The notes beneath the pieces were generated by a model. It was not told the origin of the DNA. It worked only from the letters and a program-made list of their open reading frames with translations, and ran no database searches. Of a stretch of DNA of 64,000 nt, positions 1,467 through 26,168 are shown one piece after another. The DNA lies in IMG/VR virus record IMGVR_UViG_3300028558_000791, positions 310,001-374,000 of that record. One strand, given 5' to 3'. Positions within the stretch are counted from its first letter, which is position 1. Each line of letters begins with the position of its first letter. The position numbers and the translations under genes are program-made.

Positions 1467-4400
1467 ATGGTCACAATAAGGTCAGTAAATGAAATTATTG
1501 CCAACCTGATAGACTTTTTCAGAATGGCACAACCTAACCTGGACACTAAACCAGGTACTGTGGCTAGAGATCTGTTTATCGAAGGTCCATCATCTCAATT
1601 ATCCATTCTGTATGATGAGTTACAAGGTGTCTCTAATAAGCAGTCGCTAAGACTATCTATCGGAACAGATTTAGATAAACTGGGCAAAAACTTTGGGTTA
1701 ATTAGAAAGCAGTCTACTCCATCAACAGGTGTGGCTCTATTAACGTTCTCTTCCTTAAATTCCACTATTAATGTCAATAAGGGCTCTTCTATCTTTACAT
1801 CGGGTGGTTTAGGATTCACTGTGGTCAATGGTATTTCTATTGTTCCATCCAATATCAATTTCTATCGCTCAGTCGCCAGTAAGTTCGCTGCCCAACTTGC
1901 TTTCGTAGGAATCACAGACCAATACGCTGTTGAAGTTACGGTTATCGCCTCTGCTCCAGGTTCATCTGGAAACATTGGCCAATATACGCTATCTAAAATC
2001 AGTATACCAGGTATCAGTAATGTAACCAACGTTGCCAGTTTTGCCGGTGGAACTGACCAGGAAACTGATGCGGCCTTTAGAAACCGTGTTCTATCTACAT
2101 TCAGTGGTTCCAGCGTTGGAACTCAACTCGGTTATTTGAACGCAGCTCTAAGTGTGACTGGAGTTCAGGATGCCGTTGTAATTGAGCCAGGCGACCCGCT
2201 AATGACTCGTGATGGCACTGTAACAGAAACCATCAATGGCGTCTTAACAATCGTTTCAGAGGGTTCTGGAGGTAAAGTAGATATAGCAGTTTTAGGAACT
2301 AACGATGTTGCTAATACTGACACTTTTATTTATCAAGATAAAAGTAATAATAACGATCCTACTAACTCCAAAAATGACTTTGTGCTAGGCCAAATTATTG
2401 CAGATGCTAATTTAAGTGTTTCTCAAAAGAGAGTTAAAGACATAAAGAATGGCCAGCTCCCTGCCCAACCAGTAGATTCTATTATTCAGGTAACTGGCTC
2501 AATCAGTGGTTCTAACTTTATTCCATACTCAGTAGATCAATATGGTCGTGGCTCAGGTAACTATCAACTACAGAAAGATACTGGAGTTTATGGTGGTAGC
2601 CCATTCGGATTCGATACTTTCATTTGGAAGAACAATCAAATTGAATTCCAAGAAGATTTAATCAAGGGTCAGACTAACGGTCAAGATCCAACTACATTTA
2701 CTGAAGTACAACAAATTACCGATGCTCAGCAGCAGTTGGGCGTAACAAATGAAAATAGCACTGTAACTAGCGACCGCACTATCATTCAGTTACTACATAC
2801 TCCAGCCACTAACGTCACCAGAGTCTTCAATACAAATACTGGAGAAAGATATCTAATCACCAATCAGAATTTTGATAATACCGCCCCATTTAACACAACT
2901 GGTAGAATTAAAATTTCCGGTAACACATTACCTTCCCCTAGCGATATTCTTCAGGTAGATTATACTTGGGTTGTAGATTATGATAGATATTCTGATTTCG
3001 ACGGATTGCTTGACACTCAAAATCCAAGAACTGTTACTGATAGTATAGATTGGGGATATCCTTCTGCTATTAAGAGTGAATTTGTTGATTTTACTTTAAG
3101 TCCAGGAAATAACTTTTACGTAGGAACTGCATCCCATCCGGTTGATACTGTCATTTCAACTAATAGTTATCTGCAAGTAGATGGATATGTGCAAATAATT
3201 AAGTCTGGAGCCTTCGTCAATAGACTATCAGTAGTAGTAAGTAACTTAGAGAGTCCTACTACATCAGTAGATAGTATCGTTTGGAAAAACAACGGCACAG
3301 AACTATACAAGACTGCCCAAAATGATGGTTCCTTCTCTAATTTAGCCGGAGTAGTTGGAATTGATATTGTGTATACCACAACTATCATTTTGCCAACTGA
3401 TTCAGCCGCTCAGATAGGAGATAGGGTTTCTATCTACATGAACCTTAATAATATCTTCCAGTCCGGTGCCCTACAAGGTAGCAGTAACGGAGCGCAGATA
3501 ACGATACCATCTTTGTTGGTAGGTTCATCTACTGATAGAATTAACCTAAGAGTAACATACATTGCCAATGTCAATGATCTATTCTCTTCAGCAATTACTT
3601 CCCTTCCAACTAGCAGAGTTGGTAATGGTTATGCCCTTTCCACTAACAGTGGATTCAATAACTTTAGCATTGTCAATGTATCTAGACGTGAGAATCAGAT
3701 TGTTCAGCTCAATCTAAGCAATCAATTTTTCGTAGAACTAAATCTACCAAGCTCTGATTACAATTTGGATGCCGATAAGGTTCTTTCGGTAGTCAGATTG
3801 TCTGACGGCAAGGAACTATGGAATGCTGATCATGAAGGTCAAGCTACCGTTGGAACAGATGGTAATTACCAGCTCATACTAACAGGATTCAATACTCCTG
3901 TCACGGCTGACCGTGTGTTGATAATCTATTATGCTGACGACCTACGTCGCTTCCAGCCATTCAGTTTTGGCAACCAAATCATCAAGACTAAAATCAATAA
4001 TCTAGGTGTAGACCCTATTAGTAAGAACTTCACAGTTCCATTGATTGAGCTAACTGCTCAAGCTAGCGGATTGAATTTCGAAGTAGTTGAGCAAAACAGT
4101 GATACGGTTCTTTTCAATGTATTGGATGGATACCTAACTCCAATCAGCGCTACTCAAGCTAATCTAAATAGCTTAACTGTTAACTTTTCTAGTCTCCCAG
4201 ATTTGACAAACAAGCGTATTAAAATTACGGGAGCTATTGCTCCAAATAATGACGGGTATTATGATATCATCGATTATAATGTGATGACCAATAATATCAC
4301 CATCACCAACATACTAGATCATATTACCGCGAATCAAATTTCCATAGTAAGAGTATTGGATGGTAAAGAGTTATGGAACTATAGTGGCACTATTGATCAA

Positions 4401-5561
4401 GCAAATAATAGGTTGATCATCCCTAAAACTTCCAATGCTGTAGCTAATGACTTAGTTTATGTTATGTTTTTCAACTACAATAACCTAAGAAAAGCGCCAA
4501 CTAGAATCGTAGGAACCATTGTTGACCAAGTTGTCAATGTAGGAGTTATCTCTGTTATTGGAACTAGCATGGCTCTGGCGTCTGATGTTATCTTCACGGC
4601 CACGAGCACTGGCCTCCAGCAGAATTTACAAGAAGCTTTGCGCAAGGCTTTGGGTCTCAGCTCCACAGCCAGCATTCCGTCTACTATAAAGATTGCTAAG
4701 GTTGTTAAGGCTGAGAAGGTTCAGACATTCTCCGCCGGAAGCGATATTGTTACCAGCGTATTGTCTACGTTTGATGTAATTGGAACCACAATTGCTAACA
4801 ATCTATATTTTGCAGATACTATGCAATCCAATCCATTGTTACCAAATCTAGATTTCGTTCTTCCAGCTACCACTAATAATACTTTGACTGGTTCGAATAA
4901 TAACCTACCAACTGTAGGAGATTTGATTAGAGTATCTTTCTATTACACAACTGATAATGACTCTGAAAATCTGTCATATACTCGAATTGGTTCGTTATAT
5001 ACAAATAAGAAGTTCGCGTTGATTAACCAGATTTATGTGAATAGCGGATTTCAAGCGTCTCAGGCTACCAAGTTTAGCGCTACCTCATTTACCAAGCCAA
5101 GTGTCGGTGCCAGATATACAACCTTCTACAATTATCTTGCTCCAAAACAAAATGAAAGAATTCTGATACAGTATAACTATAACAAACTGATCTCAGATAC
5201 TACCTTCACAATTGAAGGAAGCCGCCCTATCAATGCTGACGTGTTAGTCAGATCCGCTAAGTTGATTCTAATTGACCTAACTATGAACGTAGTTATCAAC
5301 CAGAATTTCTTAACGACCTCCGCTACCGTTCTGCAGAACCTGCGTAATCAAATGGTAGCTGCCTTAACTACCACACAGCTAGGTCAAACTATAGACCAAA
5401 TAACGTTAATCAATATAGCTCAAGGCGTACAGGGTATAGATAGGGCAAGAATACTCTTCTTCAACGTAACCGGACTACCAGGTCAAGTACTTAGTATCGT
5501 TGCTAACGAAGACCAATACTTCCAGTCCAATAGCATCACCATAAACACTGAAACAAGATGA
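1467..5561 (+). CDS. Baseplate J/gp47-like protein, greatly enlarged (1364 aa)
   Basis: N-terminal DTKPGTVARDL, GTDLDKLGKNFGLIRK and GGTDQETDAAFRNR motifs; C-terminal LINIAQGVQGID; long beta-rich central insert. Confidence 0.8.
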   Translation: MVTIRSVNEIIANLIDFFRMAQPNLDTKPGTVARDLFIEGPSSQLSILYDELQGVSNKQSLRLSIGTDLDKLGKNFGLIRKQSTPSTGVALLTFSSLNSTINVNKGSSIFTSGGLGFTVVNGISIVPSNINFYRSVASKFAAQLAFVGITDQYAVEVTVIASAPGSSGNIGQYTLSKISIPGISNVTNVASFAGGTDQETDAAFRNRVLSTFSGSSVGTQLGYLNAALSVTGVQDAVVIEPGDPLMTRDGTVTETINGVLTIVSEGSGGKVDIAVLGTNDVANTDTFIYQDKSNNNDPTNSKNDFVLGQIIADANLSVSQKRVKDIKNGQLPAQPVDSIIQVTGSISGSNFIPYSVDQYGRGSGNYQLQKDTGVYGGSPFGFDTFIWKNNQIEFQEDLIKGQTNGQDPTTFTEVQQITDAQQQLGVTNENSTVTSDRTIIQLLHTPATNVTRVFNTNTGERYLITNQNFDNTAPFNTTGRIKISGNTLPSPSDILQVDYTWVVDYDRYSDFDGLLDTQNPRTVTDSIDWGYPSAIKSEFVDFTLSPGNNFYVGTASHPVDTVISTNSYLQVDGYVQIIKSGAFVNRLSVVVSNLESPTTSVDSIVWKNNGTELYKTAQNDGSFSNLAGVVGIDIVYTTTIILPTDSAAQIGDRVSIYMNLNNIFQSGALQGSSNGAQITIPSLLVGSSTDRINLRVTYIANVNDLFSSAITSLPTSRVGNGYALSTNSGFNNFSIVNVSRRENQIVQLNLSNQFFVELNLPSSDYNLDADKVLSVVRLSDGKELWNADHEGQATVGTDGNYQLILTGFNTPVTADRVLIIYYADDLRRFQPFSFGNQIIKTKINNLGVDPISKNFTVPLIELTAQASGLNFEVVEQNSDTVLFNVLDGYLTPISATQANLNSLTVNFSSLPDLTNKRIKITGAIAPNNDGYYDIIDYNVMTNNITITNILDHITANQISIVRVLDGKELWNYSGTIDQANNRLIIPKTSNAVANDLVYVMFFNYNNLRKAPTRIVGTIVDQVVNVGVISVIGTSMALASDVIFTATSTGLQQNLQEALRKALGLSSTASIPSTIKIAKVVKAEKVQTFSAGSDIVTSVLSTFDVIGTTIANNLYFADTMQSNPLLPNLDFVLPATTNNTLTGSNNNLPTVGDLIRVSFYYTTDNDSENLSYTRIGSLYTNKKFALINQIYVNSGFQASQATKFSATSFTKPSVGARYTTFYNYLAPKQNERILIQYNYNKLISDTTFTIEGSRPINADVLVRSAKLILIDLTMNVVINQNFLTTSATVLQNLRNQMVAALTTTQLGQTIDQITLINIAQGVQGIDRARILFFNVTGLPGQVLSIVANEDQYFQSNSITINTETR

Positions 5562-8500
5562 TAGCAACTCTTAGAGTCGTCAATTTAGCTATAAACAGCA
5601 GCACTAGTATAGATGTTTCATTTACAGAAGCATTGACTGGTGATCTTGTGACTGGTAACGTCTCTATTCTTTCGCAGACCGAAAATGTTCCCAACTCAGA
5701 AGTTCTACAGATTTCTGTAAATGGAAATGTTCTTTCTATTACCTGCCAACCCCTCACACCATATTCGGCATTCTACTTACAGTTTCAATCTACCCCTGGT
5801 AATCCATTTATTTCTCTAAATGGAGACGCTAAAATTTCTGAGGATGGCGTCTCCAATAGGATGATTATTATTGGTCCATTACCATCTGACAATCCTGTTA
5901 ATGACTATCTACAGTCATTTTACCAAAACAACATTTACAAAACTAGTGATACCACAACGGTTGTAAATAAGTACATTCAATCTATTGCCGTTAATTTTGC
6001 TAGAGCATTATATGATATTAGGCAGCTTGGAAATGAGAACTATCTCTCATTTACCATAGTAGATGAAGTACACACAAAGGGAGAAACTCCTTTTGAAAGA
6101 CTATATGAAGAGGGAGCCTATGATGTATTTAGATTAGGTTTCGGTCTTTCAGAGGCGCCCGTATCTACTACATTTGTTTTTGATAGTTTTCCATCTTATC
6201 CAGTTACTTTGCAAAGACAATTGGTAACTGAGATTATTAAAGCTTCTTCTAACGATACTGATGGTACTTTTAATATCAATACTCTTGTTTTCAATCTAAG
6301 TAACAAGCCAGTTACTAGGGTAAATAGCATCACATTTACTTTAACTACTGCAGACCCAGTATTCGTTTACGATATTGATAAGCTCGGATACCAGATTCTA
6401 AATTCTACTTTTGACCAGGATTTTGCCTCTAGCTATTTGCTATTAGAAGACAACCAAGTCAAAATAAATGAGTCCATTCTAAGCGATCCTAATTTCTCTT
6501 TGGATCAGATATTCCATATTGTAATTGAGTACGAGTACAAAGGTTTAGGAATTCAAGTAGATCCTACTACGGTAAATACATTTGCGACCCTACAATCTGT
6601 TAGAGAAGTTCTACCTCCTATTATCAACATCTTCAGTTTAAAGCATGCTCCTATAACTGATGCATCTAATAATACTGTAACAACAGGCGGAGTATTTTTC
6701 ATAGATCCAAATTCTGGAACTGGTACTCCACATCCTGCATTCATGGTTGAAATACCATTCAGCCTCAGCGGTTTGCCATCCTCTCCAGGAGTTTACTCTA
6801 TAGACTATTCTACTGGAACTGTTTATGTATATGGTGCAAATAGCGATAATGATGGTACTGGACCGTCACCCCCACTAGCTACATACTACTATAAGTTTAC
6901 ATTCACTCCAGACATAGATTACGTTTATGATTCTGATTTGCTAGAATTGGTTGCATTACCATTAGGTAATTTGATTGACCAGGCTGGCACCATTGCATTC
7001 AATTATGAGCAAGTTTTAATTCCAGGCGTAGACTATGTTGCAGACACTCACATTGAGTCTATCAATGAAAGAATTGGCAATAAACTAAACGCCCTCAACT
7101 CTCTTACAACTCTACATTCACCAATCACTAATGTGTTTCAAATTTTCAACGAAACATCTGGTGAAATATACATTCTAGATAGATGGAATGATGACACTGT
7201 TTATTTCAGATTCAACAGCCCTCCAAGAGTATTAAACCAAATCGGAGAGAACTCTAAATTCTTCACGGTTACTAATGAGCTATTGGGAATTAATACTACT
7301 ACTACGAATGCTAATAACCTACGTATTTTCGTTATCCTATTAGCAAACAACACAATCATCAATTCATCACAAGATGGTATTGGTGCTTCGTTCAATACTA
7401 GTCTACAGTTCACGAATGGTAATGTTTTCAATAGAGAGCTGTGGTTTGACCAAGAATTCACTGCCGGTTTCAATGTAGATAGAATACAGGTTCCTGGTGA
7501 GTATGTTGTTGACTATAAGAATGGAGTTGTATACGTTGCAGTATCTTCAACCCAGAGTAATGACATTGGTACAGTTACGTACAAGAAAAACAGTATAGTT
7601 CCAAGTTTCCCACATGTCATTAGTGTAGATGATATCTATAACCGTATCAGCGTCCTAAATCCTAAGAACAAGCAGTTCTCATACTTATCATTCGGTGATG
7701 GATTCATAGTCCCACAGAATTTAGATATCTCTGATGAGGCTTTCCTTAATGGAGTTACATCATCTCCATATCAGATTTTCCAAAATCAGGTTGGGGCATT
7801 TGTACAATCCACATTCGTAAATGGCGTAACCAATGCCGTTAAGTATGTAAGAAGTGTTTATGAATTTAACGATCTAACTAACAGTAGCAACCCAATCAAT
7901 TTTGGAATTGTAAGTACTAGTAGTAATTTTAACATCACTGTTGGTTCAATCAATAGACAATCTTTTGAGAGCGTGCAGTTTGATGGTTCTAATTATTTCA
8001 TTACACTTAACGAAAACATACCATATCTTTCTCCAGGAATTACATTCACATTTGATGTGGTAAGAACATCTGATTTGCAACCACTATGGAATGGATCTGG
8101 AACTGTTGTACCGGGTAATCCACTCAAACTAATTCTTCCTGGCATTGGATCTCCTCAAATTGGAGATTTGGTAAAAGTAACTTACTCATTCTCAATTGTA
8201 CCATTAGAAAGAGTGATTGTAGATTATAATAAGGGAGATTTCTTTACTGACTATACGTATGTTGCCGATGAAATTCTAGTTAGTTACGAATATGGAGATA
8301 ACGTAATTGACTTCCGTAAGAATTTGAATTTGCCAACCGGCTCAAACTACTATGTATCTTACAAGGCTGGAGCGCTCCGTGATGCCCTTCTCAGGAACTT
8401 CGGAACATTGGTAAACGTTCCCGACTTATCTACTTTTGATTTGAGTTTGGATAGAGAAAGATACCGCGATGCCTTGTATGCCGCGCTTTCATCTTTTATT

Positions 8501-11500
8501 CAAGGACCAACCGTTGCTGCTATCAAGAACATTGGACAAGTTATTACACATGTTGAACCTGAGGTAATTGAATCGGCATTTGAAATCTGGTCATTAGGTA
8601 GCAGCCTATTGTTCCCAGTTAGTGTGCAAACTACTGGAAGCTTCCAGCTCTTACCAGCTCACTATGGTAATGGAGTGCTCATTGATCAGCCAGAACAAAC
8701 TATTACTATGCCTGTTAATTCAAACTTACGTTTGGAAGAAGGCACATTTGAAACTTGGGTACTACCACAATGGAACGGCTTAGATAATGATGCCTCATTG
8801 GCATTCCATATAACTAGAGATGGTTATGCTATAGATCCGTATAGACTATTTATCGGAGGATCAGAGTATCATCCAGAATTAGATGGTAAGTATAACTTCA
8901 CACTAAATAAGCAGTCAAATGTTACAGGTCGTCCTAATAGGAATAAAGACGGTATTTTCATCTATTATGATAAAGATATCTCTGGCAGCTTCTACCGTTG
9001 GTATGTGGAAGTTATCGATGGATATGTGGCTCCTGACAATCATATTTACCAATTCCAGATTTTCTCCTCAGGTAAATTCTACGATGTTAAACCTATTGGT
9101 GGGGTTAAGCCATCTAATATGAGTACCTTCACTGGTACTAGTAAAGTTAATCTAACCATTAGACCATCATTTGATGGATATGGAATTGATGAAGGTATTA
9201 CTTTTGTTTCTGATGTTGAGCATTACATTTTGGACTTTGGTTTGACCAAAGATTCCAATAGACTTTCTATTTTCAAAGATGTAAGTGGATACATGAACTT
9301 CCGAGTTTATGATAGAGACCACAAGATGTATACTATTAGTGCCGATGTATCATCTTGGAAAAATAACGTACCTCACATGGTAGCAGCTTCTTGGAAGTTG
9401 AATACTAAGAACAATCGTGATGAGATGCATTTGTTCATTGATGGGTTGGAAGTTCCAAATATCATCAAGTACGGACAGAAACTACAGCCGTATCTACATG
9501 AGAAATTTAGAACTGTTAACCCAGAAGAAATAGTGGGTCTAGCAACTCGCGATATCGTTGGTTCAACAGATTTGGCCACTTTAGAAGGTTCTACTCTAGT
9601 TACATCGAGTATCAACTTTAGTGATTTTAAAGTGTTCATTGGAGATACTATCTTCATTAACGAAAATGGATTTTCTCCGGTTGGATATACGATTATCAAT
9701 ATCAATGGCCAATCATTAACTCTAAATTCGGCGATGCCTGTCACTATGAATGGTGGTAGATTCTCTGTTAATCAGACTGAGTTCCCAGTTTCATCTGAGA
9801 TTAACATTGCTCCAAATATCGCAGTAACTACAGTACATACATTTGCTACCGGCACTGATCTAACTACAATCTCGGGATCTGCTACAGTAACATCTGTTGG
9901 AACTAACTTTAGTGCGTTGGGCGTCAAACCAGGCTTCATACTAAGAATAGATAATTCTTCTTTTGCTCTAACCTATAGCATTGTTCAAGTAAGTGGTAAT
10001 TCACTCACCATTACCGATCCATCTCCACTAAGTCTATCTGGAGTTACTTTCCAGATCTACTCAAATGTAGAGAACGAAATTCCTGGTGTTAGGGCGCTTC
10101 ATCCAGCCTACAGCATTACTCAAGATGCTAATTTCAATAATATTTTGACTGTATCAAATGATGTTTTTGCTAACGATCTAATCCTAATTAGAACGCTCGG
10201 CTTAAACTTTAAGGATATCAAAAAACAATATTATGTTTGGAGTTCTCAGATAGAGAACGTTCTACAGACTCAATTGCCTCCACCAATCAATTTGGACCAG
10301 GCCAACATCACTAGAATTATTACACCAACCACTGCTATTGGTCCAGCTAATTCTACTTTAATGGCAGGCGTATTTGTTTCTAACTATCTACCAACAGCAA
10401 AACCATCTAATGCTCAAGTTGGTAGAACTATACAAGCTACTATTAGCGGTACTAACGTTGATTTCTCTGTGCCAGTACAAGTTACTATTAATGGTATTTC
10501 AGGCATTAATACAATCAATGAGACTATTACATTTACTAACTATGGTACTCTAGATTTTACTAACACTTTTGTTACAGTTAACTACGTATGGGTTAATGTT
10601 AAACCAGTCAATGCAAGTAAAAATGCATTAGCATTAGAGTTGAGAGAAAAATACCCAATGACTCATGGCGAGTCCAGTGGTCTAGTTCCAGTTATTAGAT
10701 ATAGCTATCATATCAATGGAGGTTATACTCTAGGCGGTAATGGTATTGATAATACAGTAACCGATCTAAACAATACGTTTAGTGCGCTGGATATCAACAA
10801 CTATTTGATTATCCATTCGCCACCAACTGTAGCTGGATTCTATTTGATTACCGGGCTATCTACTGATAGACACTCAATAACTATTCAGCCAACTGCCGCA
10901 TCTTTCTCAGTGCCACTACCTTATTTTGCTAACGGAGCATACCAGGTACTAAACACTACGCAATATCGTAGCGGCTTGCAAAACGGATATTTTACTCTAG
11001 AAGCTGGAGTTCTTCCAGGTCAACAGTATTTCCTTGACCAAGGATTCTATGAACTAGAGTACTCTACTTACGCTAGAATTAAGTTTGATGCTCTTAACAC
11101 CAAGATGTATATCGGAAGTGATTTCCAGGGACATAGTCAAGCAAATTCTATTATCGACCAAGCAACTATCTACTCAATCATGTTGACCGATACTAGAGTT
11201 GGTGAAGTAATTGCCCTACACAAACATTCTGTCACCAAAGATTTCAACTCTCTAAGGCCACCTAAAGCAGACTCTAATACGTTAGCGCTGATTGACTTTG
11301 ATACTTATCCATTTACTAATGATGCCAGCTTTTATGCTAGCACCAACAATGACCATAAACATTTCCAATCAGATTTTACGGTTAATGATAACTTCAGTCA
11401 GAGCTTGGTAATCTTGGATGAGCCGCTAGTTTTATCTAACGATGGAATATTGGATACTAGACATCAAGGAACTATTGAATTCTGGATGAGTCCAATATTC

Positions 11501-12712
11501 GATACATCTAATGATCCAAACACTAGATACTACTTTGATGCCTTTGGCGCCGTAACTGAAACCGTCACTAGTGTTAGCAACGTAGCAGTCAAGTTGTCTT
11601 CTCCAGCTTCTAAGATTTTAAGTGTTACTCTGGCAGCAGGTGATCCTAAAATTGATTACTTTGCTGGTGGTCAGTTGGAGATTGATACTCAGCATGCCAT
11701 CCAAGAAGAATCTATGGTTACAGGAATGTCCATTGTAACAGTCTCTCAGCCAATTCTTCAAGTCATTACTGTTAAGATTGCAGGAGACCTAACTGAGAAG
11801 GATTACTTTGCTAACGGAAGCGTCGGAGCTGATGGAAAAACTATCTTCTTGGGTATCTCAACTCCACAAGCAAATGTAGATGTTATCGTTACTTATCAGA
11901 CAACGAGCAATAACAACGTCACGCTCAATACCCAGGTCATTAGACTCAACAGGAAGCTACCTGCGCAAAATTCTAAGGTTGTTGTAACCTATATTCCAAC
12001 CGGACTCCAGGGAGACCGCCTCTCAATTTATAAAGACCCATACGGTTACATTAATTTTACCATCCGTGCTTCTGACTCTGACTTTGTAGTTAGAGCGCCA
12101 GTTCGCTGGGCACAAAACACCTGGCACCGTGTCAAAGCAAGTTACAAGATCAATAATGGTCTTGGACAAGATGAAATGAGACTATTCCTAGATGGATATC
12201 AGTATACTGATGTGCTATTTGGTGAAGGACTGTCTTTTGGCAAGTTCCCAATGGTTTATGGTTCTGTAGCAGTAGGAGATGGTTACAGTTTGGTAGGCAG
12301 CATTTCTTTCAAGGACCCAATTAACACGCTGTATATTGGATCTGATTTTAATAAGAATAACCCAATCTATACCCTGTTGGATAATTTTAGGGTCAGCAAT
12401 CTCTCTAGACCGATCTATGCCCCTTATGGAGAGCCTCTAGATGCAAACTTTAGCAGTAACTTAAGTACGGTTTTCCCAGTTACAAAAGACTTATACACAA
12501 CTTTACTGATAGATTTTGACAGGTTGAATGCCTTGAATACAGATTTTGCCACTTTGATTGATAGAGCTAATGGAGCTTTTGATTTTACTGTGAATATCTT
12601 CGATTCTTTTGGTATAGTTAGTGGTAGTGCGAAAGTCAAAGAAGTACTTGAAAACCTTATCAATATCCTAAAGCCAGCCAACTGCAGGGTGTTTATTAAG
12701 TATATTACCTGA
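5558..12712 (+). CDS. Giant virion baseplate-region protein with LamG/concanavalin-like domains (2384 aa)
   Basis: LRNFGTLV...RERYRDAL...QGPTVAAIK (tail-I/wedge-like); EGTFETW/HMVAASW/LFIDG and QGTIEFW/WHRVKASY/LFLDG/LYIGSD/LDNFRVS LamG motifs; C-terminal LKPANCRV. Confidence 0.65.
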   Translation: MIATLRVVNLAINSSTSIDVSFTEALTGDLVTGNVSILSQTENVPNSEVLQISVNGNVLSITCQPLTPYSAFYLQFQSTPGNPFISLNGDAKISEDGVSNRMIIIGPLPSDNPVNDYLQSFYQNNIYKTSDTTTVVNKYIQSIAVNFARALYDIRQLGNENYLSFTIVDEVHTKGETPFERLYEEGAYDVFRLGFGLSEAPVSTTFVFDSFPSYPVTLQRQLVTEIIKASSNDTDGTFNINTLVFNLSNKPVTRVNSITFTLTTADPVFVYDIDKLGYQILNSTFDQDFASSYLLLEDNQVKINESILSDPNFSLDQIFHIVIEYEYKGLGIQVDPTTVNTFATLQSVREVLPPIINIFSLKHAPITDASNNTVTTGGVFFIDPNSGTGTPHPAFMVEIPFSLSGLPSSPGVYSIDYSTGTVYVYGANSDNDGTGPSPPLATYYYKFTFTPDIDYVYDSDLLELVALPLGNLIDQAGTIAFNYEQVLIPGVDYVADTHIESINERIGNKLNALNSLTTLHSPITNVFQIFNETSGEIYILDRWNDDTVYFRFNSPPRVLNQIGENSKFFTVTNELLGINTTTTNANNLRIFVILLANNTIINSSQDGIGASFNTSLQFTNGNVFNRELWFDQEFTAGFNVDRIQVPGEYVVDYKNGVVYVAVSSTQSNDIGTVTYKKNSIVPSFPHVISVDDIYNRISVLNPKNKQFSYLSFGDGFIVPQNLDISDEAFLNGVTSSPYQIFQNQVGAFVQSTFVNGVTNAVKYVRSVYEFNDLTNSSNPINFGIVSTSSNFNITVGSINRQSFESVQFDGSNYFITLNENIPYLSPGITFTFDVVRTSDLQPLWNGSGTVVPGNPLKLILPGIGSPQIGDLVKVTYSFSIVPLERVIVDYNKGDFFTDYTYVADEILVSYEYGDNVIDFRKNLNLPTGSNYYVSYKAGALRDALLRNFGTLVNVPDLSTFDLSLDRERYRDALYAALSSFIQGPTVAAIKNIGQVITHVEPEVIESAFEIWSLGSSLLFPVSVQTTGSFQLLPAHYGNGVLIDQPEQTITMPVNSNLRLEEGTFETWVLPQWNGLDNDASLAFHITRDGYAIDPYRLFIGGSEYHPELDGKYNFTLNKQSNVTGRPNRNKDGIFIYYDKDISGSFYRWYVEVIDGYVAPDNHIYQFQIFSSGKFYDVKPIGGVKPSNMSTFTGTSKVNLTIRPSFDGYGIDEGITFVSDVEHYILDFGLTKDSNRLSIFKDVSGYMNFRVYDRDHKMYTISADVSSWKNNVPHMVAASWKLNTKNNRDEMHLFIDGLEVPNIIKYGQKLQPYLHEKFRTVNPEEIVGLATRDIVGSTDLATLEGSTLVTSSINFSDFKVFIGDTIFINENGFSPVGYTIININGQSLTLNSAMPVTMNGGRFSVNQTEFPVSSEINIAPNIAVTTVHTFATGTDLTTISGSATVTSVGTNFSALGVKPGFILRIDNSSFALTYSIVQVSGNSLTITDPSPLSLSGVTFQIYSNVENEIPGVRALHPAYSITQDANFNNILTVSNDVFANDLILIRTLGLNFKDIKKQYYVWSSQIENVLQTQLPPPINLDQANITRIITPTTAIGPANSTLMAGVFVSNYLPTAKPSNAQVGRTIQATISGTNVDFSVPVQVTINGISGINTINETITFTNYGTLDFTNTFVTVNYVWVNVKPVNASKNALALELREKYPMTHGESSGLVPVIRYSYHINGGYTLGGNGIDNTVTDLNNTFSALDINNYLIIHSPPTVAGFYLITGLSTDRHSITIQPTAASFSVPLPYFANGAYQVLNTTQYRSGLQNGYFTLEAGVLPGQQYFLDQGFYELEYSTYARIKFDALNTKMYIGSDFQGHSQANSIIDQATIYSIMLTDTRVGEVIALHKHSVTKDFNSLRPPKADSNTLALIDFDTYPFTNDASFYASTNNDHKHFQSDFTVNDNFSQSLVILDEPLVLSNDGILDTRHQGTIEFWMSPIFDTSNDPNTRYYFDAFGAVTETVTSVSNVAVKLSSPASKILSVTLAAGDPKIDYFAGGQLEIDTQHAIQEESMVTGMSIVTVSQPILQVITVKIAGDLTEKDYFANGSVGADGKTIFLGISTPQANVDVIVTYQTTSNNNVTLNTQVIRLNRKLPAQNSKVVVTYIPTGLQGDRLSIYKDPYGYINFTIRASDSDFVVRAPVRWAQNTWHRVKASYKINNGLGQDEMRLFLDGYQYTDVLFGEGLSFGKFPMVYGSVAVGDGYSLVGSISFKDPINTLYIGSDFNKNNPIYTLLDNFRVSNLSRPIYAPYGEPLDANFSSNLSTVFPVTKDLYTTLLIDFDRLNALNTDFATLIDRANGAFDFTVNIFDSFGIVSGSAKVKEVLENLINILKPANCRVFIKYIT

Positions 12713-12720
12713 GAGAAGTA

Positions 12721-15700
12721 ATGACAAAGCGAGCCCCCGTATCCGTACAAAAACCAATTTGGTATGATGCCCAGCAGGTAGACGAGACCGATCTATCTTC
12801 TGAGCAGACAGCTAATGACACTATTGATGCTGCCATTATTAACAACCACATTGGAGACGGTGTTCTACCAGAGAACCTGGTGGCCAATGTTTTGTTTGAC
12901 TCCAGCCTAACCACTGGCTTTTTAGATGGTCTTGCCATTCAAACACAAGTTCAGCCCTCCGATAACAATTTCGGCAATCAACTTACCATCACCCTAACCG
13001 GCTCAAAGGCATCTGGCCATCGCCGTGTTAAAGTAGGTATTATTGGATTGGACTTTCAATCCAACTTGCAATATGAAACCTTTTATTTCAAGAGTAATGA
13101 AGTTCAAGTTAGCAGGCGCCATTTTACTAAAATTCTAGTGCTACTATTCAATGACTTTATTGGAGATGACGAGCTATCTTTCAATCTAGGTGGAAATATT
13201 GTTATTGCAGAGGCTCTGCCAATGACTCTTTCAAGAGATATTGTAATGATCTCACAAGAGCAACAGCCCAATCTATTCTTCAGAGACTTCTTCCTAGACT
13301 CTTCCATTAGTAAATTGTCTATCCAAACAATGTTGCAAGACGCGCTACCACTATACAACATAGATAGTCTCAATATCTTAGGCGCCCCACTTGATAATCT
13401 ACCAATTCTAAGTGGTGACGTTACTACTCAGATTGGACAAAAGTTTCAAGCTACCACCAATAGCGTTCAAAAGATTTCTCTATTACTATCCGTAAGAAAT
13501 CAGGTTGCAGGAAAAGAAGATGATTTAGTTTGGAGCGGAGATATTGTTGTTAGTATCTATCCTCTACAGACTAGCATTGATTGTCCAACAGACTTCTTAC
13601 CAAATCTACCAATCGATTTCTCGCCATCTAATATTCCAGTTGCTCAAATTAGCTATAACTATAATAGCTTAACTGCTGCTGGTATAGTTCTTGATTCAGT
13701 TCCACAGCCAGTAGACTTTGTATTTAGTAATAGTCCTGTTGCCGGCGGTAATCAAATGGTACCGGGCCAATACTATGCTCTTACCATTAAGCGTTCAGGT
13801 TCCGCCAATCAATGTGACATCTTAGTCGCAACTGGTCAAGATCTAATTACTAACTCCAGAATCACTACATTTACTGGGACATTATGGGTTGATATTCCTG
13901 ACCAAGATTTATGGTTTATTGTTTGGACAGATGCCGCTAAAGTGTCTGATGGACAAGCCTACGATCAAGGTCATGGTGTTACTATCCCTAAGACAACTAC
14001 CGATCCAACAACGTTGGCTACAGTAGATAATGTATTTGGTTCCAAGCAGTTCGTTGGTAATGATGTATTTAGAGCCGTTCTTGCGGCCGTTACCCAGGTT
14101 TCCGATCCTGTACCAGACCAGAGAACTGGTAACCCAGTTGATTCTCGTCAAGAATATGTTCCTCAAGTTACATTGATGAACAGCATTGACATTACCAATC
14201 TAGAAAAATCATCTGAGCCACTTATCCTTGGCGCTATCTCTGACAAGAACATTAAGTTCTTTGATGCAAGCCAGCAAATCATCAACTCTACATTGTATAG
14301 TGCTACGATGGTTAAAGATGAAATTGTTATTAGAATAGTTGATGACCCAACTGATACTGTAAGATTTGATTTATCAGTTAGTGGATTGGCAACTAGCCTA
14401 TTAAATGGTGATTTGGTTGGAGCTATTATTAGACCAGATGCTGCCGCTCCATTCACATCATATCGTTTGGCTGGCGCTAGACTATGTTCCATGATTTTAG
14501 GTGATGTAGATGGTAATGGAATTATCGATGAAAAAGATTTAGCTTTGTTGAATACGTTTGTTGGTTACAATATGAACGTTGGACTACCAGCTCATACCAA
14601 TATCGTAACAGACGGTTACACTACTACTTTCCAAAATGGATATCAAAGCCTTACTCAACCGTTCGCCAATCTATTCGGCATTAGCTTCCAGCTAATTAAC
14701 CCAAATGATGGTTCTGTTGTTGCTGCAGCTACTGATGGTGTTTTAGTTGCTAACCCATCCGATCCAACTTTAGCTCAATTTACTAGTGCGACTATACAAT
14801 TCAATACCATTGTTGGTCTCAGCTCTTACAAATTGGTTATTCTAAGCAGTGGTTCTAATGAAGCTGATTGGGGTGGCTGGAATATTACCGCACTAGACTC
14901 TAGTGTAGATGTTATTACTATTCAGAAGATATTGCTAACTGGAGACGTATTTGCCCAGATGCTAAGGGCTGATATCAACGGTGACTTTGCTGTTACTACA
15001 GCGGACGGATACTTACTCGGTAGTTACATTGATAGACTTCCAACCACGGCTATCCCTCCAGCTACATATCCAGCTCCAAGCACAAATCCATATACTAAAA
15101 TTGGAACTCGTTTTAACGTTATTAGATTAAGAGTGGAAGAGTTAGTAGATAGACTTGATGATTATACTGCTGATCCTAATACTCGTGCATTGACCGTCCA
15201 TCCACAACAAGACATCTTCTCTGGTGATGGTTACTTCGCCAACCATAATTTCTATACATCTCCAATCCAAATGGCTTTTACCAAGCAATTGGTCTGGGAC
15301 GCTTCATTGGTTATTACTAACGCTCATCCAAAGCTAGTACCAAGTGTATTCACGTCTGAAACTGGTGTTGTTCATAATGCTTGTGAGATAGAAGGCATTC
15401 AATGCAATGTCTATCCAGTCCCACAACCATTCGATCCAGGCAAGGTAGACTTCTTTGTACCTAACAACCTCATCATCGGTGATGGTGAGCTACAGCGTCC
15501 AGACGGATATTTCTACAAAGTAGACTTTGAAGTTGGTACAGTCGTTCTAGAGATTCCAGACGGATTGTTTGGTTCAGAACGAACTATTGACATCATGAAT
15601 GATTTTATCTCTGATTACACAGGCAATGGTGCGACTCGTCTTGGATTCCCATCCATGAGATTTGCAGACTGCTCTTATGTGCAGAGAGATGCTCTATCAA

Positions 15701-16746
15701 AGGATCAAATTAGATTTTCGGTTTCTGTGCAGTCTTTCTCACCAAATACAGCCGGTTTGAGTCCCGATGGATATACGGGAGCCATTGTAGATGGTAAGAT
15801 GGGTGTAAGCGTAGACTTTGAAACCGGCTTGCTCACATTGAACTTCAGTAATTTGTATCAGGACCCAACCCTCTTGACTCTAAGTACCAAGGTACAAGTC
15901 AATGTGTTCTTGAAGAAGGGCGGGTTTAACAACATGCCAATCTTCGTAGACTCTACTAAGGTCCAGAACATGCTAAGTTTGATTAGTGTCTTCAGCGGTG
16001 CCAATGATGGCGGCCCATCTGCTCTAGTAGATTTAGGTAATGATGTAACTGGAATCCTACCAATCTTGAATGGTGGTACCGGTCTCAATGCAGTAGGAGC
16101 TTTCGGAACCGTGCTCACAAGCACCGGAAGCGGACTAAGCTATCAATTCATTAATACTTTGCTCAACGTCATTCCATTCTCTAGTGGTATCCCATCTGCT
16201 GATAAGGTTCCAAAGCTTGATGGTTATGGATTCCTAGACCCAAGCTTTATGTACAAACAACCAATGTATATTGTTGGTGTGGCTGGAAACTACTCTAATG
16301 ATGGATATATTCCATCAGCCATTGGCGCCCTTACATTTAGACTAGATAGCTTCATTCTAGAAGGTCTAGATAGTATTAAGCTAGAGTGTATTCTAGAAAC
16401 TACTAATGTGGCTAGCACAGCAGGTCTACAGCTATTTAATGTAGATAACCACACTTATGTTCCTCTTAATGGATCTAGTACGGCTTTGATAACTACCAAT
16501 GTACAAGCAACGTACTTAGTATCTCAGGACCTAAAGGGATTGTTATACACGGGAGCTACGAACTTTGTATATGAAATCCATCTATTCTCGAATCCTGGTG
16601 GTTCATTGGATACGGGTATCTGCAAGATGGCAAGATTGGTTATGACATACAACAATTTGACTTTGAATGGAGTCTCTGCAATTGCACCTCCAGTATCTCA
16701 TAGCTACAACTTCGTACCGTTCCTACCAAGCCCAACTCCATCATAA
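12721..16746 (+). CDS. Large virion structural protein with dockerin/EF-hand-like repeats (1341 aa)
   Basis: N-terminal WYDAQQVDETDLSSEQ; GDVDGNGIIDEKDL and ADINGDFAVTTAD repeats; GILPILNGGTG fibre-like motif; last gene of the structural operon. Confidence 0.6.
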   Translation: MTKRAPVSVQKPIWYDAQQVDETDLSSEQTANDTIDAAIINNHIGDGVLPENLVANVLFDSSLTTGFLDGLAIQTQVQPSDNNFGNQLTITLTGSKASGHRRVKVGIIGLDFQSNLQYETFYFKSNEVQVSRRHFTKILVLLFNDFIGDDELSFNLGGNIVIAEALPMTLSRDIVMISQEQQPNLFFRDFFLDSSISKLSIQTMLQDALPLYNIDSLNILGAPLDNLPILSGDVTTQIGQKFQATTNSVQKISLLLSVRNQVAGKEDDLVWSGDIVVSIYPLQTSIDCPTDFLPNLPIDFSPSNIPVAQISYNYNSLTAAGIVLDSVPQPVDFVFSNSPVAGGNQMVPGQYYALTIKRSGSANQCDILVATGQDLITNSRITTFTGTLWVDIPDQDLWFIVWTDAAKVSDGQAYDQGHGVTIPKTTTDPTTLATVDNVFGSKQFVGNDVFRAVLAAVTQVSDPVPDQRTGNPVDSRQEYVPQVTLMNSIDITNLEKSSEPLILGAISDKNIKFFDASQQIINSTLYSATMVKDEIVIRIVDDPTDTVRFDLSVSGLATSLLNGDLVGAIIRPDAAAPFTSYRLAGARLCSMILGDVDGNGIIDEKDLALLNTFVGYNMNVGLPAHTNIVTDGYTTTFQNGYQSLTQPFANLFGISFQLINPNDGSVVAAATDGVLVANPSDPTLAQFTSATIQFNTIVGLSSYKLVILSSGSNEADWGGWNITALDSSVDVITIQKILLTGDVFAQMLRADINGDFAVTTADGYLLGSYIDRLPTTAIPPATYPAPSTNPYTKIGTRFNVIRLRVEELVDRLDDYTADPNTRALTVHPQQDIFSGDGYFANHNFYTSPIQMAFTKQLVWDASLVITNAHPKLVPSVFTSETGVVHNACEIEGIQCNVYPVPQPFDPGKVDFFVPNNLIIGDGELQRPDGYFYKVDFEVGTVVLEIPDGLFGSERTIDIMNDFISDYTGNGATRLGFPSMRFADCSYVQRDALSKDQIRFSVSVQSFSPNTAGLSPDGYTGAIVDGKMGVSVDFETGLLTLNFSNLYQDPTLLTLSTKVQVNVFLKKGGFNNMPIFVDSTKVQNMLSLISVFSGANDGGPSALVDLGNDVTGILPILNGGTGLNAVGAFGTVLTSTGSGLSYQFINTLLNVIPFSSGIPSADKVPKLDGYGFLDPSFMYKQPMYIVGVAGNYSNDGYIPSAIGALTFRLDSFILEGLDSIKLECILETTNVASTAGLQLFNVDNHTYVPLNGSSTALITTNVQATYLVSQDLKGLLYTGATNFVYEIHLFSNPGGSLDTGICKMARLVMTYNNLTLNGVSAIAPPVSHSYNFVPFLPSPTPS

Positions 16747-17530: not shown

Positions 17531-17543
17531 TATAGAAAGGTTC

Positions 17544-19468: not shown

Positions 19469-19523
19469 TTCGGTTGGCAAATGCCATTTTGGTAAATGGT
19501 ATCTTCATCAAACGTCTGAGAAG

Positions 19524-19805: not shown

Positions 19806-19821
19806 TAGGAGTATATGTGTT

Positions 19822-20658: not shown

Positions 20659-20668
20659 GGTATCATTC

Positions 20669-22711: not shown

Positions 22712-22718
22712 GGTGTAA

Positions 22719-23693: not shown

Positions 23694-23718
23694 TATAGTA
23701 GGACGCACAGGAGAAATA

Positions 23719-26147: not shown

Positions 26148-26168
26148 CTAAAGTAATTGGCGGTATGT

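Follow-up and report, generated by a model that had tools for sequence, protein, structure and literature searches.

The window analyzed here is a 64,000-nucleotide stretch of a phage genome from a rhizosphere metagenome, positions 310,001 to 374,000 of IMG/VR record IMGVR_UViG_3300028558_000791. It carries three giant genes of the baseplate region, candidate sugar-modifying genes directly downstream of them, and several genes for fibre-like proteins. The tripeptide Asp-Gly-Tyr (DGY) recurs in the giants and in some of the other proteins.

Genes and DGY sites in the window

The features are listed below, with the number of orthologues that carry DGY at the same column where this was determined.

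1467-5561 (+), giant 1 (1364 aa), a Baseplate_J/baseplate wedge N-terminal domain (Pfam PF04865, 1.7e-25; phrog_6) with a long extension; 3 DGY, all outside the J domain
3180-3188 (+), DGY, giant 1 residue 572; 19 of 57 orthologues
4125-4133 (+), DGY, giant 1 residue 887; 44 of 57 orthologues
4251-4259 (+), DGY, giant 1 residue 929; 12 of 57 orthologues, otherwise NGI/NGL/NGT
5558-12712 (+), giant 2 (2384 aa), with a ConA/LamG-like domain near the C-terminus (PF13385, residues 2142-2249, just below the cut-off); 5 DGY
8819-8827 (+), DGY, giant 2 residue 1088; 6 of 11 orthologues
9017-9025 (+), DGY, giant 2 residue 1154; 9 of 11 orthologues
9173-9181 (+), DGY, giant 2 residue 1206; 5 of 11 orthologues
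12191-12199 (+), DGY, giant 2 residue 2212, in the LamG-like LFLDGY strand; 11 of 11 orthologues
12278-12286 (+), DGY, giant 2 residue 2241; 8 of 11 orthologues
12721-16746 (+), giant 3 (1341 aa), a fibre-like, putative receptor-binding protein with dockerin/EF-hand-like loops, tail-fibre motifs and a predicted TNF-like jelly-roll tip; 7 DGY
14611-14619 (+), DGY, giant 3 residue 631, in a confidently predicted (AF2) beta-hairpin loop; 65 of 110 orthologues, 15 parsimony changes
15004-15012 (+), DGY, giant 3 residue 762; the Asp is residue 12 of an EF-hand/dockerin-like DxNxD loop, read directly from the sequence, and Gly-Tyr opens the following helix (AF2); 110 of 110 orthologues
15226-15234 (+), DGY, giant 3 residue 836, in a low-confidence AF2 segment; 105 of 110 orthologues
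15502-15510 (+), DGY, giant 3 residue 928, toggling with DGN, DGE and DGS; 34 of 110 orthologues, 7 parsimony changes
15766-15774 (+), DGY, giant 3 residue 1016; 104 of 110 orthologues
16219-16227 (+), DGY, giant 3 residue 1167, in the conserved tail-fibre motif KLDGYGFLDPS; 107 of 110 orthologues
16300-16308 (+), DGY, giant 3 residue 1194, in a hairpin loop of the TNF-like tip domain (AF2 and Foldseek); 47 of 110 orthologues, 9 parsimony changes
16829-17530, a conserved unknown ORF
17544-18680 (+), a GT4-family (GT-B) glycosyltransferase (PF13439/PF00534, both just below their cut-offs; its Atlas neighbours are GT4) and candidate modifying enzyme
19578-19586 (+), a single DGY in a small ORF between the GT2 and Fpg genes, compatible with chance
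20669-21661 (+), a conserved 330-aa protein of the same cluster with an N-terminal TM helix, a coiled coil and a beta-rich C-terminus, of unknown function and probably not an enzyme
22719-23693 (+), a dTDP-glucose 4,6-dehydratase-like enzyme (TIGR01181, 3.8e-106, 354.8 bits against a cut-off of 365), a candidate donor-sugar pathway
41354-42193 (-), a 279-aa ORF with weak methyltransferase likeness, absent from relatives; 4 DGY in two tandem pairs (41666, 41678, 42041, 42059)
42183-43586, an AMP-ligase
43610-47623 (-), a Gly-rich fibre-like protein (1337 aa) that shares its N-terminal anchor domain with other fibre paralogues; 1 DGY at 44165
55997-58753 (-), a Gly-rich fibre-like protein; 1 DGY at 57059
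60737-63058 (-), a Gly-rich fibre-like protein; 1 DGY at 61325

A sequence-only reading had counted 15 in-frame DGY sites in the three giants and eight further copies in the window, and its observation was confirmed at every coordinate. The giants contain 42 Asp-Gly dipeptides, of which 15 are followed by Tyr, whereas composition predicts 0.95 DGY. As that reading had claimed, there are none in the ORFs for the SF2 helicase, DnaB, RNR, PhoH or tubulin. However, its description of the motif as a property of virion proteins should be narrowed to the distal tail. The major head protein and the tape-measure-like protein have no DGY and the sheath has one. The motif is instead concentrated in baseplate giants, fibre-like proteins and Kelch-like proteins, while the non-virion methyltransferase-like ORF carries four copies.

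Over-representation of DGY at the peptide level

We compared the count in the giants with randomized sequences. In 20,000 whole-protein shuffles the mean was 0.95 and the maximum 7, and shuffling within 50-aa windows gave a mean of 1.12 and a maximum of 8, against the 15 observed. Across the 480-kb genome there are 80 DGY against 21.8 expected from composition or 29.2 from a Markov model, which ranks DGY first of 8,000 tripeptides; DGF, DGW, DGH, NGY, EGY and SGY are at expectation. The virion modules of this genome and of two relatives, G002 and G003, hold 133 DGY against 11.2 expected, about twelve times more than chance. Other conserved genes hold 15 against 24.5, although this depletion is marginal (P about 0.03) and the orthologues are not independent. 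DGY is also the top tripeptide in low-charge large proteins of all five genomes compared, apart from collagen-like repeats in G002.

The signal lies in the peptide rather than in the DNA. Of 24 GAYGGNTAY sites in the window, 23 are in frame. Genome-wide within ORFs there are 80 sites in frame, 2 and 19 in the other sense frames and 9 antisense; in the virion module the in-frame count is 64 against 1, 3, 2, 2 and 0. Fourteen of the 16 codon combinations are used. In an all-vs-all BLAST comparison the flanks were unrelated, except for Kelch blades and one Gly-rich beta-helix repeat outside the three giants. The enrichment extends over about 75 related loci with GC contents of 26-48%, which show 4-22 sites against about 1 expected; the exceptions are three truncated loci (L140, L143 and L144; 0-1 sites) that end before the giants. 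No enrichment was found in T4, SPO1, phiKZ, the phage G baseplate, or the two other jumbo phages LR745208 and Tunturi_5.

Turnover of DGY sites and replacement of the tyrosine

To examine how the sites evolve, we aligned orthologues of the giants. Each of 110 giant 3 orthologues has 3-9 DGY against 0.26 expected. Among them 28 columns carry DGY, 4 near-invariant and 19 sporadic, and parsimony gives 86 changes, against 2-28 for most control tripeptides. DGY ranks first of 3,440 tripeptides both for conserved sites and for sporadic columns. The same pattern holds in the other two giants: in 57 giant 1 orthologues 22 columns carry DGY, none of them in the first 20% of the protein, and in 11 giant 2 orthologues 18 columns carry DGY and only residue 2212 is invariant. 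Some sites arrived within loop insertions of 5-7 aa, and tandem pairs number 17 against 5.4 expected. The sites are individually dispensable, since the giant 3 orthologue of the relative G004 has none, even at the four columns that are otherwise near-invariant, while the other tail proteins of G004 are DGY-rich. The predicted structural contexts differ and include hairpin loops, a helix N-terminus and low-confidence linkers.

When the Tyr of a DGY site is lost, Phe almost never replaces it. Phe makes up 1/189 (in the giant 3 orthologues) and 2/50 of replacements at DGY tyrosines, against 42% and 66% at other Tyr columns of the same proteins (Fisher 3e-38 and 1e-18, respectively). Together with the absence of DGW enrichment, these results indicate that the hydroxyl is what matters.

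Possible functions of DGY in the distal tail

The sequence-only reading had inferred that DGY marks virion proteins for a phage-encoded process, with Tyr O-glycosylation or acylation by the glycosyltransferases and ligase of the window, Asp-Gly isoaspartate chemistry or cross-linking, and docking to an assembly factor as options. This interpretation is partly supported. Selection does act on the peptide, rather than on DNA or a domain repeat, and is specific to certain protein classes; we add that it is clade-wide, evolutionarily dynamic and dependent on the Tyr hydroxyl. Marking for a phage-encoded process is still the best reading, although it is an inference without direct evidence of any modification. 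The AMP-ligase and both GT2 genes are ruled out as general agents, since the ligase is absent from all relatives tested and the GT2 genes are absent from G003 and from the most DGY-rich genome, G005. The isoaspartate route has no support because the genome has no PCMT. The GT4 and the dehydratase stay syntenic with the giants across the clade and so remain candidates. The GT4 follows the giants in G002-G005, G009 and G012, every relative examined, and is absent from phage G. The dehydratase is present at full length in G002, G003 and G005, whereas in G004 only a 44-aa fragment survives at the contig end.

An artefact or neutral effect of composition, a cryptic domain repeat, a DNA-level site (a restriction, uptake or packaging motif) or a general property of tail proteins is very unlikely and was largely refuted here. 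The fibre paralogues of Bacillus phage G (gp420-gp431), the nearest named relative, do show 14 DGY against 2.2 expected, T4 baseplate and tail proteins show a slight excess of 5 against 1.3, and Kelch blades and one beta-helix repeat account for a few sites in the present genome. About half of the phage G copies sit in two repeated domain motifs with conserved flanks, NGRHTDGYWYVRG and LVDGYxVKxGGN. There, as in the Kelch-like proteins of this genome, DGY follows a turn and opens a beta-strand, but in the giants the flanks are unrelated and sites arise de novo, with gains that recur independently. The shuffles never reached the observed count, the frame and strand asymmetry, codon usage and GC range exclude a DNA site, and neither non-virion genes of the same genomes nor the control phages are enriched. 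It is also unlikely that DGY is a docking motif, recognized as a short peptide epitope during tail morphogenesis, for an assembly factor or a baseplate partner, such as a fibre chaperone (possibly the small protein after giant 3) or the Kelch-like proteins. The motif is restricted to proteins that must be assembled onto the baseplate, ORF 16829-17530 and a protein like a tail-fibre-assembly factor lie nearby, and several fibre paralogues share an N-terminal anchor domain. Docking motifs, however, normally number one or two per protein at fixed positions rather than 3-11 shifting ones, ORF 16829-17530 is absent from G003 and G004, and there is no evidence of any interaction.

Two further alternatives, adhesion sites and structural clamps, remain live, although we consider each less likely than modification. 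In the former, somewhat the more plausible of the two, hairpin tips presenting an Asp carboxylate next to a Tyr hydroxyl would form many weak non-covalent binding sites for a repeating host-surface polymer (a polysaccharide or phosphate-rich glycan), possibly through a cation, and avidity would depend on the number of sites rather than their positions. The motif is confined to host-facing parts and to scaffolds typical of lectins, namely the LamG-like domain, the TNF-like tip, which resembles a cyanophage fibre carbohydrate-binding domain and a TNF-like lectin, and Kelch propellers with DGY in successive blades. Turnover, loop insertions and tandem copies fit selection for avidity, and the alternative residues at toggling sites are hydrophilic, which suggests exposure. 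On the other hand, a linear tripeptide is rarely a complete binding site, sugar-stacking sites usually accept Trp or Phe, yet DGW and DGF are not enriched and Phe almost never replaces the Tyr, the strict requirement for Gly is unexplained, and the methyltransferase-like non-virion ORF also carries four copies. In the latter, an Asp-Gly turn would be locked by an Asp-Tyr side-chain hydrogen bond, or Asp and Tyr from three chains would coordinate a hard metal ion on the axis of trimeric fibres, and the motif would be selected for virion robustness. This would explain the need for the hydroxyl, the Asp and the Gly. Two sites lie in confidently predicted beta-hairpin loops, three of the four near-invariant giant 3 sites lie in segments that a monomer prediction cannot model, as expected for trimeric shafts, one site is part of a Ca-binding-type loop, and in most orthologues the DG or NG turn is kept even when Tyr is absent. 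Nevertheless, a generally stabilizing micro-motif should be enriched in tail proteins of other phages, and it is not. Direct DGYDGY tandems and sites inside loop insertions fit a single hairpin or an axial site poorly, the sites are dispensable as in G004, and Kelch blades are not trimer axes. The analogous His-x-His iron sites of the T4 long tail fibre tip (gp37) are likewise a three-residue motif repeated along a fibre, with side chains i and i+2 as ligands and a strict chemical requirement. They form a regular array on the trimer axis, whereas DGY is irregular, occurs in loops and Kelch blades and has an obligatory Gly; HxH is not co-enriched in this genome (123 against 102 expected).

We tentatively favor the possibility that DGY is a surface-displayed acceptor site for a clade-specific covalent O-modification of Tyr made in the infected cell. 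The enrichment, its peptide-level nature, its clade specificity, the turnover of sites, the failure of Phe to replace Tyr and the gene synteny were all established by the analysis, whereas it is inferred that any modification occurs, that it is glycosylation and which enzyme performs it. The best candidate is glycosylation with a 6-deoxyhexose-type sugar by the GT4 and the dTDP-glucose 4,6-dehydratase. The link between GT4 and the DGY clade is weak, as it rests on a single phylogenetic contrast, and no GT4 enzyme is known to glycosylate tyrosine. The same cluster holds a membrane-anchored protein, an Fpg-like glycosylase and variable GT2 genes, so it could instead serve host-envelope or DNA modification. 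In addition, four sites in giant 3 and one in giant 2 are near-invariant within conserved motifs (an EF-hand-like loop, KLDGYGFLDPS and the LamG LFLDGY), which fits structural roles at least there, and DGY sits at the canonical turn of Kelch blades.

There are precedents for short sequons and for virus-encoded glycosylation at unusual sites. The bacterial PglB sequon D/E-X-N-X-S/T and the Bacteroidota O-glycosylation motif D-(S/T)-(A/I/L/V/M/T) are, like DGY, linear motifs of 3-5 residues, scattered through unrelated sequence, with an acidic residue two positions before the acceptor or opening the motif, respectively, and a hydroxyl or amide side chain as the acceptor. These bacterial systems act in the periplasm, whereas phage tails assemble in the cytoplasm. 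The atypical NTXT/NIPG sites of chlorovirus Vp54 are modified by virus-encoded enzymes (PMC9614988). Tyr as the acceptor with a fixed Gly in between is not known to have been described. In mycobacteriophages, glycosyltransferases encoded next to structural genes decorate virion proteins (Freeman et al. 2023, cited in PMC11256854 and PMC12582341). Those sites are reportedly in capsid and tail-tube subunits, and no tripeptide sequon or proteome-wide motif enrichment is known to have been reported for them; here the capsid protein has no DGY. The shifting N-glycan sequons that form the glycan shield of eukaryotic viral envelope proteins are also gained and lost among close relatives, often within loop insertions, while their number is maintained, but they use host machinery and NxS/T on Asn, and their function in immune evasion has no obvious equivalent here.

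We propose that DGY is a short linear motif under positive selection in the distal tail proteins of a large clade of phages of roughly 0.35-0.5 Mb, to which the genome of the window belongs. In this view the tyrosine hydroxyl is the selected group, presented just after an Asp-Gly turn, mostly in loops and peripheral domains, which points to an undescribed tag or binding site. If DGY is an acceptor site, the total load of sites rather than their exact positions would be what selection maintains in these phages.

Enrichment of the DGY tripeptide at the peptide level

The window covers bases 310,001-374,000 of a 480,838-bp single-contig phage genome with a GC content of 43%. We first re-examined the three large ORFs in which a sequence-only reading had counted an excess of the tripeptide Asp-Gly-Tyr (DGY):

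1467-5561: giant 1, with a Baseplate_J / baseplate-wedge N-terminal domain and a long extension
5558-12712: giant 2, with a LamG-like domain near the C-terminus
12721-16746: giant 3

The observation held in full, as these ORFs contain exactly the 15 in-frame DGY sites that had been listed. There are 42 Asp-Gly dipeptides in the three proteins and their composition predicts 0.95 DGY. In 20,000 whole-protein shuffles the mean was 0.95 and the maximum 7, and shuffling within 50-residue windows gave a mean of 1.12 and a maximum of 8. The eight further copies listed for the window are also real, and the helicase, DnaB, RNR, PhoH and tubulin ORFs have none, as had been claimed. Since shuffled sequences never reached the observed count, neither overall nor local composition explains the excess.

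We explored the possibility that the signal resides in the DNA, such as a restriction/modification, uptake, packaging or Chi-like site, by comparing reading frames and codons. Of 24 GAYGGNTAY sites in the window, 23 are in frame. Within the ORFs of the whole genome there are 80 in frame, 2 and 19 in the other two sense frames, and 9 antisense, while the counts in the virion module are 64 against 1, 3, 2, 2 and 0. The 19 out-of-frame copies are in sense frame +2 and mostly outside the virion module, against 2 in frame +1, these being raw counts without a codon-usage expectation. Fourteen of the 16 codon combinations occur, the degeneracy falls exactly at wobble positions, and the enrichment persists in relatives with GC from 26% to 48%. 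These results argue against a fixed DNA word and indicate a signal at the level of the peptide.

The signal covers the whole genome and is highly specific. Among 575 crude ORFs (144,826 aa), DGY occurs 80 times where composition predicts 21.8 and a first-order Markov model 29.2, and it ranks first of 8,000 tripeptides by either measure. DGF, DGW, DGH, NGY, EGY, SGY and the other DGx tripeptides sit at expectation. The next most over-represented tripeptides genome-wide are HHH (16 vs 1.5) and HTH (12 vs 3.4), which come mostly from two 95-aa His-rich ORFs, one at genome positions 85477-85764 and one at window positions 25609-25896. HxH as a class is not enriched (123 vs 102), and there is thus no co-enrichment of HxH metal motifs.

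The sites are concentrated in two regions. The virion module at 255-395 kb holds 64 against about 5-7 expected, and the other region, at 60-110 kb, holds two Kelch-like proteins. In tail proteins the ratio of observed to expected is about 12. Other conserved genes of three genomes hold 15 against 24.5, which is no enrichment and perhaps a mild depletion; since this is only marginal (P about 0.03, with orthologues that are not independent), we do not lean on it. Within the virion module, the major head protein and a tape-measure-like protein have none and the sheath has one. The carriers are the baseplate giants, several fibre-like proteins that share an N-terminal anchor domain, and other low-charge proteins without a family assignment. 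The shared domain, of 60-75 aa, is found in at least four fibre-like proteins (window 43610-47623, minus strand; genome 383831, 382340 and 284602) and also in three relatives, G002-G004. It is probably a common baseplate-attachment module for interchangeable fibres. The Gly-rich (about 13.5% Gly), Asp-poor fibre-like ORFs at window 55997-63058 (minus strand), continuing into genome 375295-379077, carry about 15 copies of a Cys-containing repeat of the form VTYTGxTATTFTGCTGGTGxM. This makes TGC, GCT and CTG the next most over-represented tripeptides in virion proteins. Two of these ORFs also match the small E1_FCCH beta-barrel domain.

To look for a cryptic domain or tandem repeat, 83-aa windows around the 80 sites were compared by all-vs-all BLAST. 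The flanks were mutually unrelated except for Kelch blades, one Gly-rich beta-helix repeat and a few marginal pairs, and a flank logo showed no consensus beyond the three residues other than low charge. Hidden repeats detectable by sequence are therefore not supported, although remote structural repeats are not excluded.

Distribution of DGY in the clade and turnover of its sites

The nearest named relative is Bacillus phage G, at 30% identity over the baseplate-J domain. IMG/VR holds many closer relatives with contigs up to about 470 kb, and the protein collection records contigs up to about 510 kb for giant-3 orthologues. We examined two whole relatives (G002, 394 kb; G003, 452 kb) and two fragments (G004 and G005) together with the genome of the window. 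DGY is the top tripeptide in G004 (32 vs 7.8) and G005 (38 vs 6.7). In G002 (72 vs 19.8) it comes behind collagen-like repeat tripeptides only, and it is weaker in G003 (43 vs 24.5). The repeats in G002 belong to long collagen-like G-P-Q / T-G-P proteins (loci L045-L064; GPQ 114 vs 11 expected), which the window's genome lacks. Of 76 loci around baseplate-J homologues at 42-94% identity, all but three have 4-22 DGY against about 1 expected, while DGF and NGY are at or below expectation. The three exceptions (L140, L143 and L144; 0-1 sites) end just after the J domain and lack the giants. Four outgroup loci at 30-31% identity have 0-2.

To determine whether DGY enrichment is a general property of tail proteins, DGY was counted in other phages.

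Table. DGY in control genomes and regions (observed; expected)
T4: 17; 8-11
SPO1: 6; 7-8
phiKZ: 19; 14-18
Phage G, first 400 kb: 28; 18-24
Phage G tail/baseplate, 50 kb: 3; 2.85
LR745208, baseplate region: 2; 1.8
Tunturi_5, baseplate region: 4; 1.5

We regard these controls as not enriched. In low-charge proteins of 300 aa or more, the five clade genomes have 61/4.9, 49/3.4, 25/3.3, 20/2.2 and 37/1.9 (observed/expected), whereas T4, SPO1 and phiKZ have 2/1.0, 1/0.9 and 2/1.9. DGY is the top tripeptide in low-charge large proteins of all five clade genomes, apart from collagen-like repeats in G002. Phage G does show a smaller, partly domain-borne excess in its fibre paralogues gp420-gp431, with 14 against 2.2. 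These form a cluster of giant proteins (locus L155, phage G 316-348 kb) next to an XkdX-family gene, and about half of their copies sit in two repeated domain motifs with conserved flanks, 'NGRHTDGYWYVRG' and 'LVDGYxVKxGGN', which is the ordinary explanation there. This may be an ancestral, domain-borne form of the same Asp-Gly-Tyr turn.

The evolution of the sites was examined in 110 full-length orthologues of giant 3 at 58% identity or more. Every orthologue has 3-9 DGY (median 6) against 0.26 expected. Twenty-eight alignment columns carry DGY in at least one sequence, of which four are near-invariant (residues 762, 836, 1016 and 1167), five are intermediate and 19 are sporadic. Among 3,440 tripeptides, DGY ranks first both for conserved sites and for sporadic columns relative to expectation. 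Fitch parsimony on a FastTree phylogeny gives 86 state changes for DGY, while DGF, NGY, DGS, DGT, DGN, SGY, TGY, DSY, YGD and GYD give 2-28. DGV and DGI give 63-65, and they are among the forms with which DGY alternates. Giant 1 (57 orthologues, 22 columns) and giant 2 (11 orthologues, 18 columns, one invariant) behave the same way. Some sites arrived inside 5-7 residue loop insertions, and tandem pairs at spacing 3-8 number 17 against 5.4 expected, including direct DGYDGY in four proteins of three genomes. The 50%-identity orthologue of giant 3 in G004 has no DGY at all, not even at the four near-invariant columns, although other tail proteins of G004 are rich in it. Individual sites are therefore dispensable while the load is maintained. 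In giants 1 and 3 the sites avoid the conserved N-terminal core and lie in the peripheral and distal parts.

The replacement of the tyrosine is informative. At Tyr-majority columns outside DGY, Phe makes up 42% (giant 3) and 66% (giant 1) of the non-Tyr residues, which is the usual Tyr/Phe exchange. At DGY columns Phe makes up only 1 of 189 and 2 of 50 (Fisher 3e-38 and 1e-18, with sequences that are not independent), and the Tyr is replaced instead by Ile, Thr, Asn, Glu, Ser and the like. Trp is not enriched after Asp-Gly either. The Tyr is therefore not there as a generic aromatic packing or stacking residue; the hydroxyl matters, although this does not show that it is glycosylated.

Two other systems that move or mark short sites were considered and do not fit. 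In a diversity-generating retroelement, variation is confined to a variable region of about 100 bp at adenine-templated codons, with a template repeat and a reverse transcriptase. The DGY sites are instead dispersed over more than 100 kb and dozens of proteins, and the replacement residues include Glu, which AAY mutagenesis cannot reach; this judgement rests on the distribution and the residues alone. Maturation-protease motifs occur once or a few times per substrate at propeptide boundaries of head proteins, whereas there are 3-11 DGY sites per fibre protein and none in the major head protein.

The phage DNA is found in rhizosphere metagenomes, and baseplate-J relatives (loci L207 and L208) occur on contigs binned as Bacteroidales and Chitinophagales MAGs, which hints at Bacteroidota hosts, but weakly. 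IMG/VR labels the 480-kb record 'provirus', which looks doubtful for a genome of this size and content. Within the window, ARAGORN found no tRNA genes and no Rfam family reached the gathering threshold. A GH25 muramidase (26157-27008) and an M23 peptidase (54894-55670) are present.

Predicted structural context and neighbouring genes

An AlphaFold2 model of giant 3 residues 600-1341 was built from a 54-sequence alignment. The structural context consequently rests on seven sites in one mediocre monomer model (mean pLDDT 61.5). Two sites (631 and 1194) are predicted in confident beta-hairpin loops and one (762) at the start of a helix, where its Asp is residue 12 of an EF-hand/dockerin-like loop. 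The remaining four are in low-confidence segments, and three near-invariant sites fall in unmodelled segments. Two dockerin/EF-hand-like DxNxD(G) calcium-loop motifs lie about 150 residues apart (window 14500-15012, residues about 594-762), and Pfam Dockerin_1 is precomputed on many orthologues. The C-terminal domain (window 16000-16746) is predicted as a TNF-like jelly-roll tip, and its Foldseek matches include a cyanophage A-1(L) short-tail-fibre carbohydrate-binding domain, a Bdellovibrio fibre tip and a Photorhabdus TNF-like lectin. Giant 3 also carries classic tail-fibre sequence motifs. It is therefore a fibre-like receptor-binding protein.

A gene cluster directly after giant 3 (window 16829-25077) stays syntenic with the baseplate giants across the clade. 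It contains, in order:

an unknown 233-aa ORF
17544-18680: a GT4 glycosyltransferase
a GT2
an Fpg/Nei-like DNA glycosylase
20669-21661: a conserved 330-aa protein with an N-terminal TM helix
a second GT2
22719-23693: a dTDP-glucose 4,6-dehydratase-like enzyme
a TubZ/PhuZ-like tubulin

The GT4 and the 330-aa protein follow the giants in G002-G005. The dehydratase matches full-length in G002, G003 and G005, while in G004 only a 44-aa fragment remains at the contig end. The GT4 is also present in a 47%-identity clade member and in a 473-kb relative. It is syntenic with the giants in six relatives, but it is absent from the complete phage G genome. This link between enzyme and motif is a single phylogenetic contrast, and other roles for the cluster are possible. 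The GT2 genes and Fpg come and go among relatives. The 330-aa protein was considered as a hidden enzyme, but it looks like a membrane-anchored coiled-coil protein.

The sequence-only reading had proposed that DGY may mark virion proteins for a phage-encoded process, with the glycosyltransferases and a ligase of the window, or isoaspartate chemistry, among its options. This interpretation was partly supported. Both GT2 genes are missing from G003 and from G005, the most DGY-rich genome. The AMP-dependent ligase (42183-43586) and the adjacent ORF are absent from the relatives examined. Together they occupy window 41354-43586 on the minus strand, where the PaaK/FlxY-like aryl-CoA ligase sits next to a methyltransferase-like ORF that carries four DGY in two tandem pairs; the flexirubin-ligase likeness fits a Bacteroidota connection. 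The ligase and both GT2 genes are therefore rejected as candidates by their distribution. Isoaspartate/succinimide chemistry is likewise not supported, since no PCMT was found in the genome and other DGx tripeptides are not enriched. Searches of the genome for enzymes of tyrosine sulfation, DOPA formation, AMPylation or glycogenin-type Tyr glucosylation gave no hits for Sulfotransfer_3 (PF13469), tyrosinase (PF00264, a search without a positive control), Fic (PF02661) or GT8 (PF01501), although host enzymes are not excluded.

Possible roles of the motif

The analysis establishes that selection acts on the tripeptide itself, that it depends on the Tyr hydroxyl, that it is restricted to the distal tail and specific to a clade, and that sites are continually gained and lost while the load is maintained. 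These properties are what one expects of a recognition code. That the tyrosine is modified at all, that the modification would be a glycan and that the neighbouring enzymes would attach it are inferences, and no modification has been observed.

We propose, tentatively, that DGY is an acceptor site for a Tyr-directed covalent modification, most plausibly glycosylation by the GT4 and the dTDP-sugar pathway. This reading accounts for the hydroxyl requirement, the acidic residue two positions upstream (compare D/E-X-N-X-S/T), the positional freedom, the loop insertions, the varied structural contexts and the synteny. It has precedents in virus-encoded glycosylation at unusual sites (PMC9614988) and in mycobacteriophage virion glycosylation (cited in PMC11256854 and PMC12582341). 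The near-invariant sites probably also have structural roles. A multivalent adhesion site remains possible and is only somewhat less favored, since lectin-type scaffolds support it while the lack of tolerance for Trp or Phe argues against it. An Asp-Tyr turn or axial metal clamp is less likely still, as it would explain the chemistry but not the clade specificity, the dispensability of sites or the tandems. An assembly-docking motif is unlikely because such motifs are usually few and fixed in position, and an artefact or neutral cause is very improbable, having been largely refuted by the tests described here.

Full-text searches found no description of a DGY or Asp-Gly-Tyr motif in phage proteins or as a tyrosine-modification site, and the giants and most carriers are annotated only as hypothetical. 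The phenomenon resembles known sequon systems but fits none of them, and its mechanism could turn out to be of a new kind. A broader form of the proposal, which is doubtful on present evidence but not excluded, is that a widespread clade of half-megabase soil and rhizosphere phages encodes a Tyr-directed protein modification system, probably O-glycosylation, with the three-residue sequon Asp-Gly-Tyr. In this view it would decorate the host-recognition apparatus, and the load of sites would evolve by continual gain and loss like a glycan shield. This would be a new acceptor chemistry and the first sequon-defined virion modification in phages.

A tripeptide that is selected across a whole proteome, changes position over time and depends on one chemical group is the signature of a recognition code such as a sequon, a docking motif or a binding site, and none has been described for phage tails. 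If DGY is a minimal adhesion or clamp motif, it is a compact and portable element of fibre design. If DGY is a modification site, it reveals a new Tyr-directed enzyme activity, would give a simple sequence marker for finding substrates in metagenomes, and would also show how very large phages tune or protect their adsorption apparatus.
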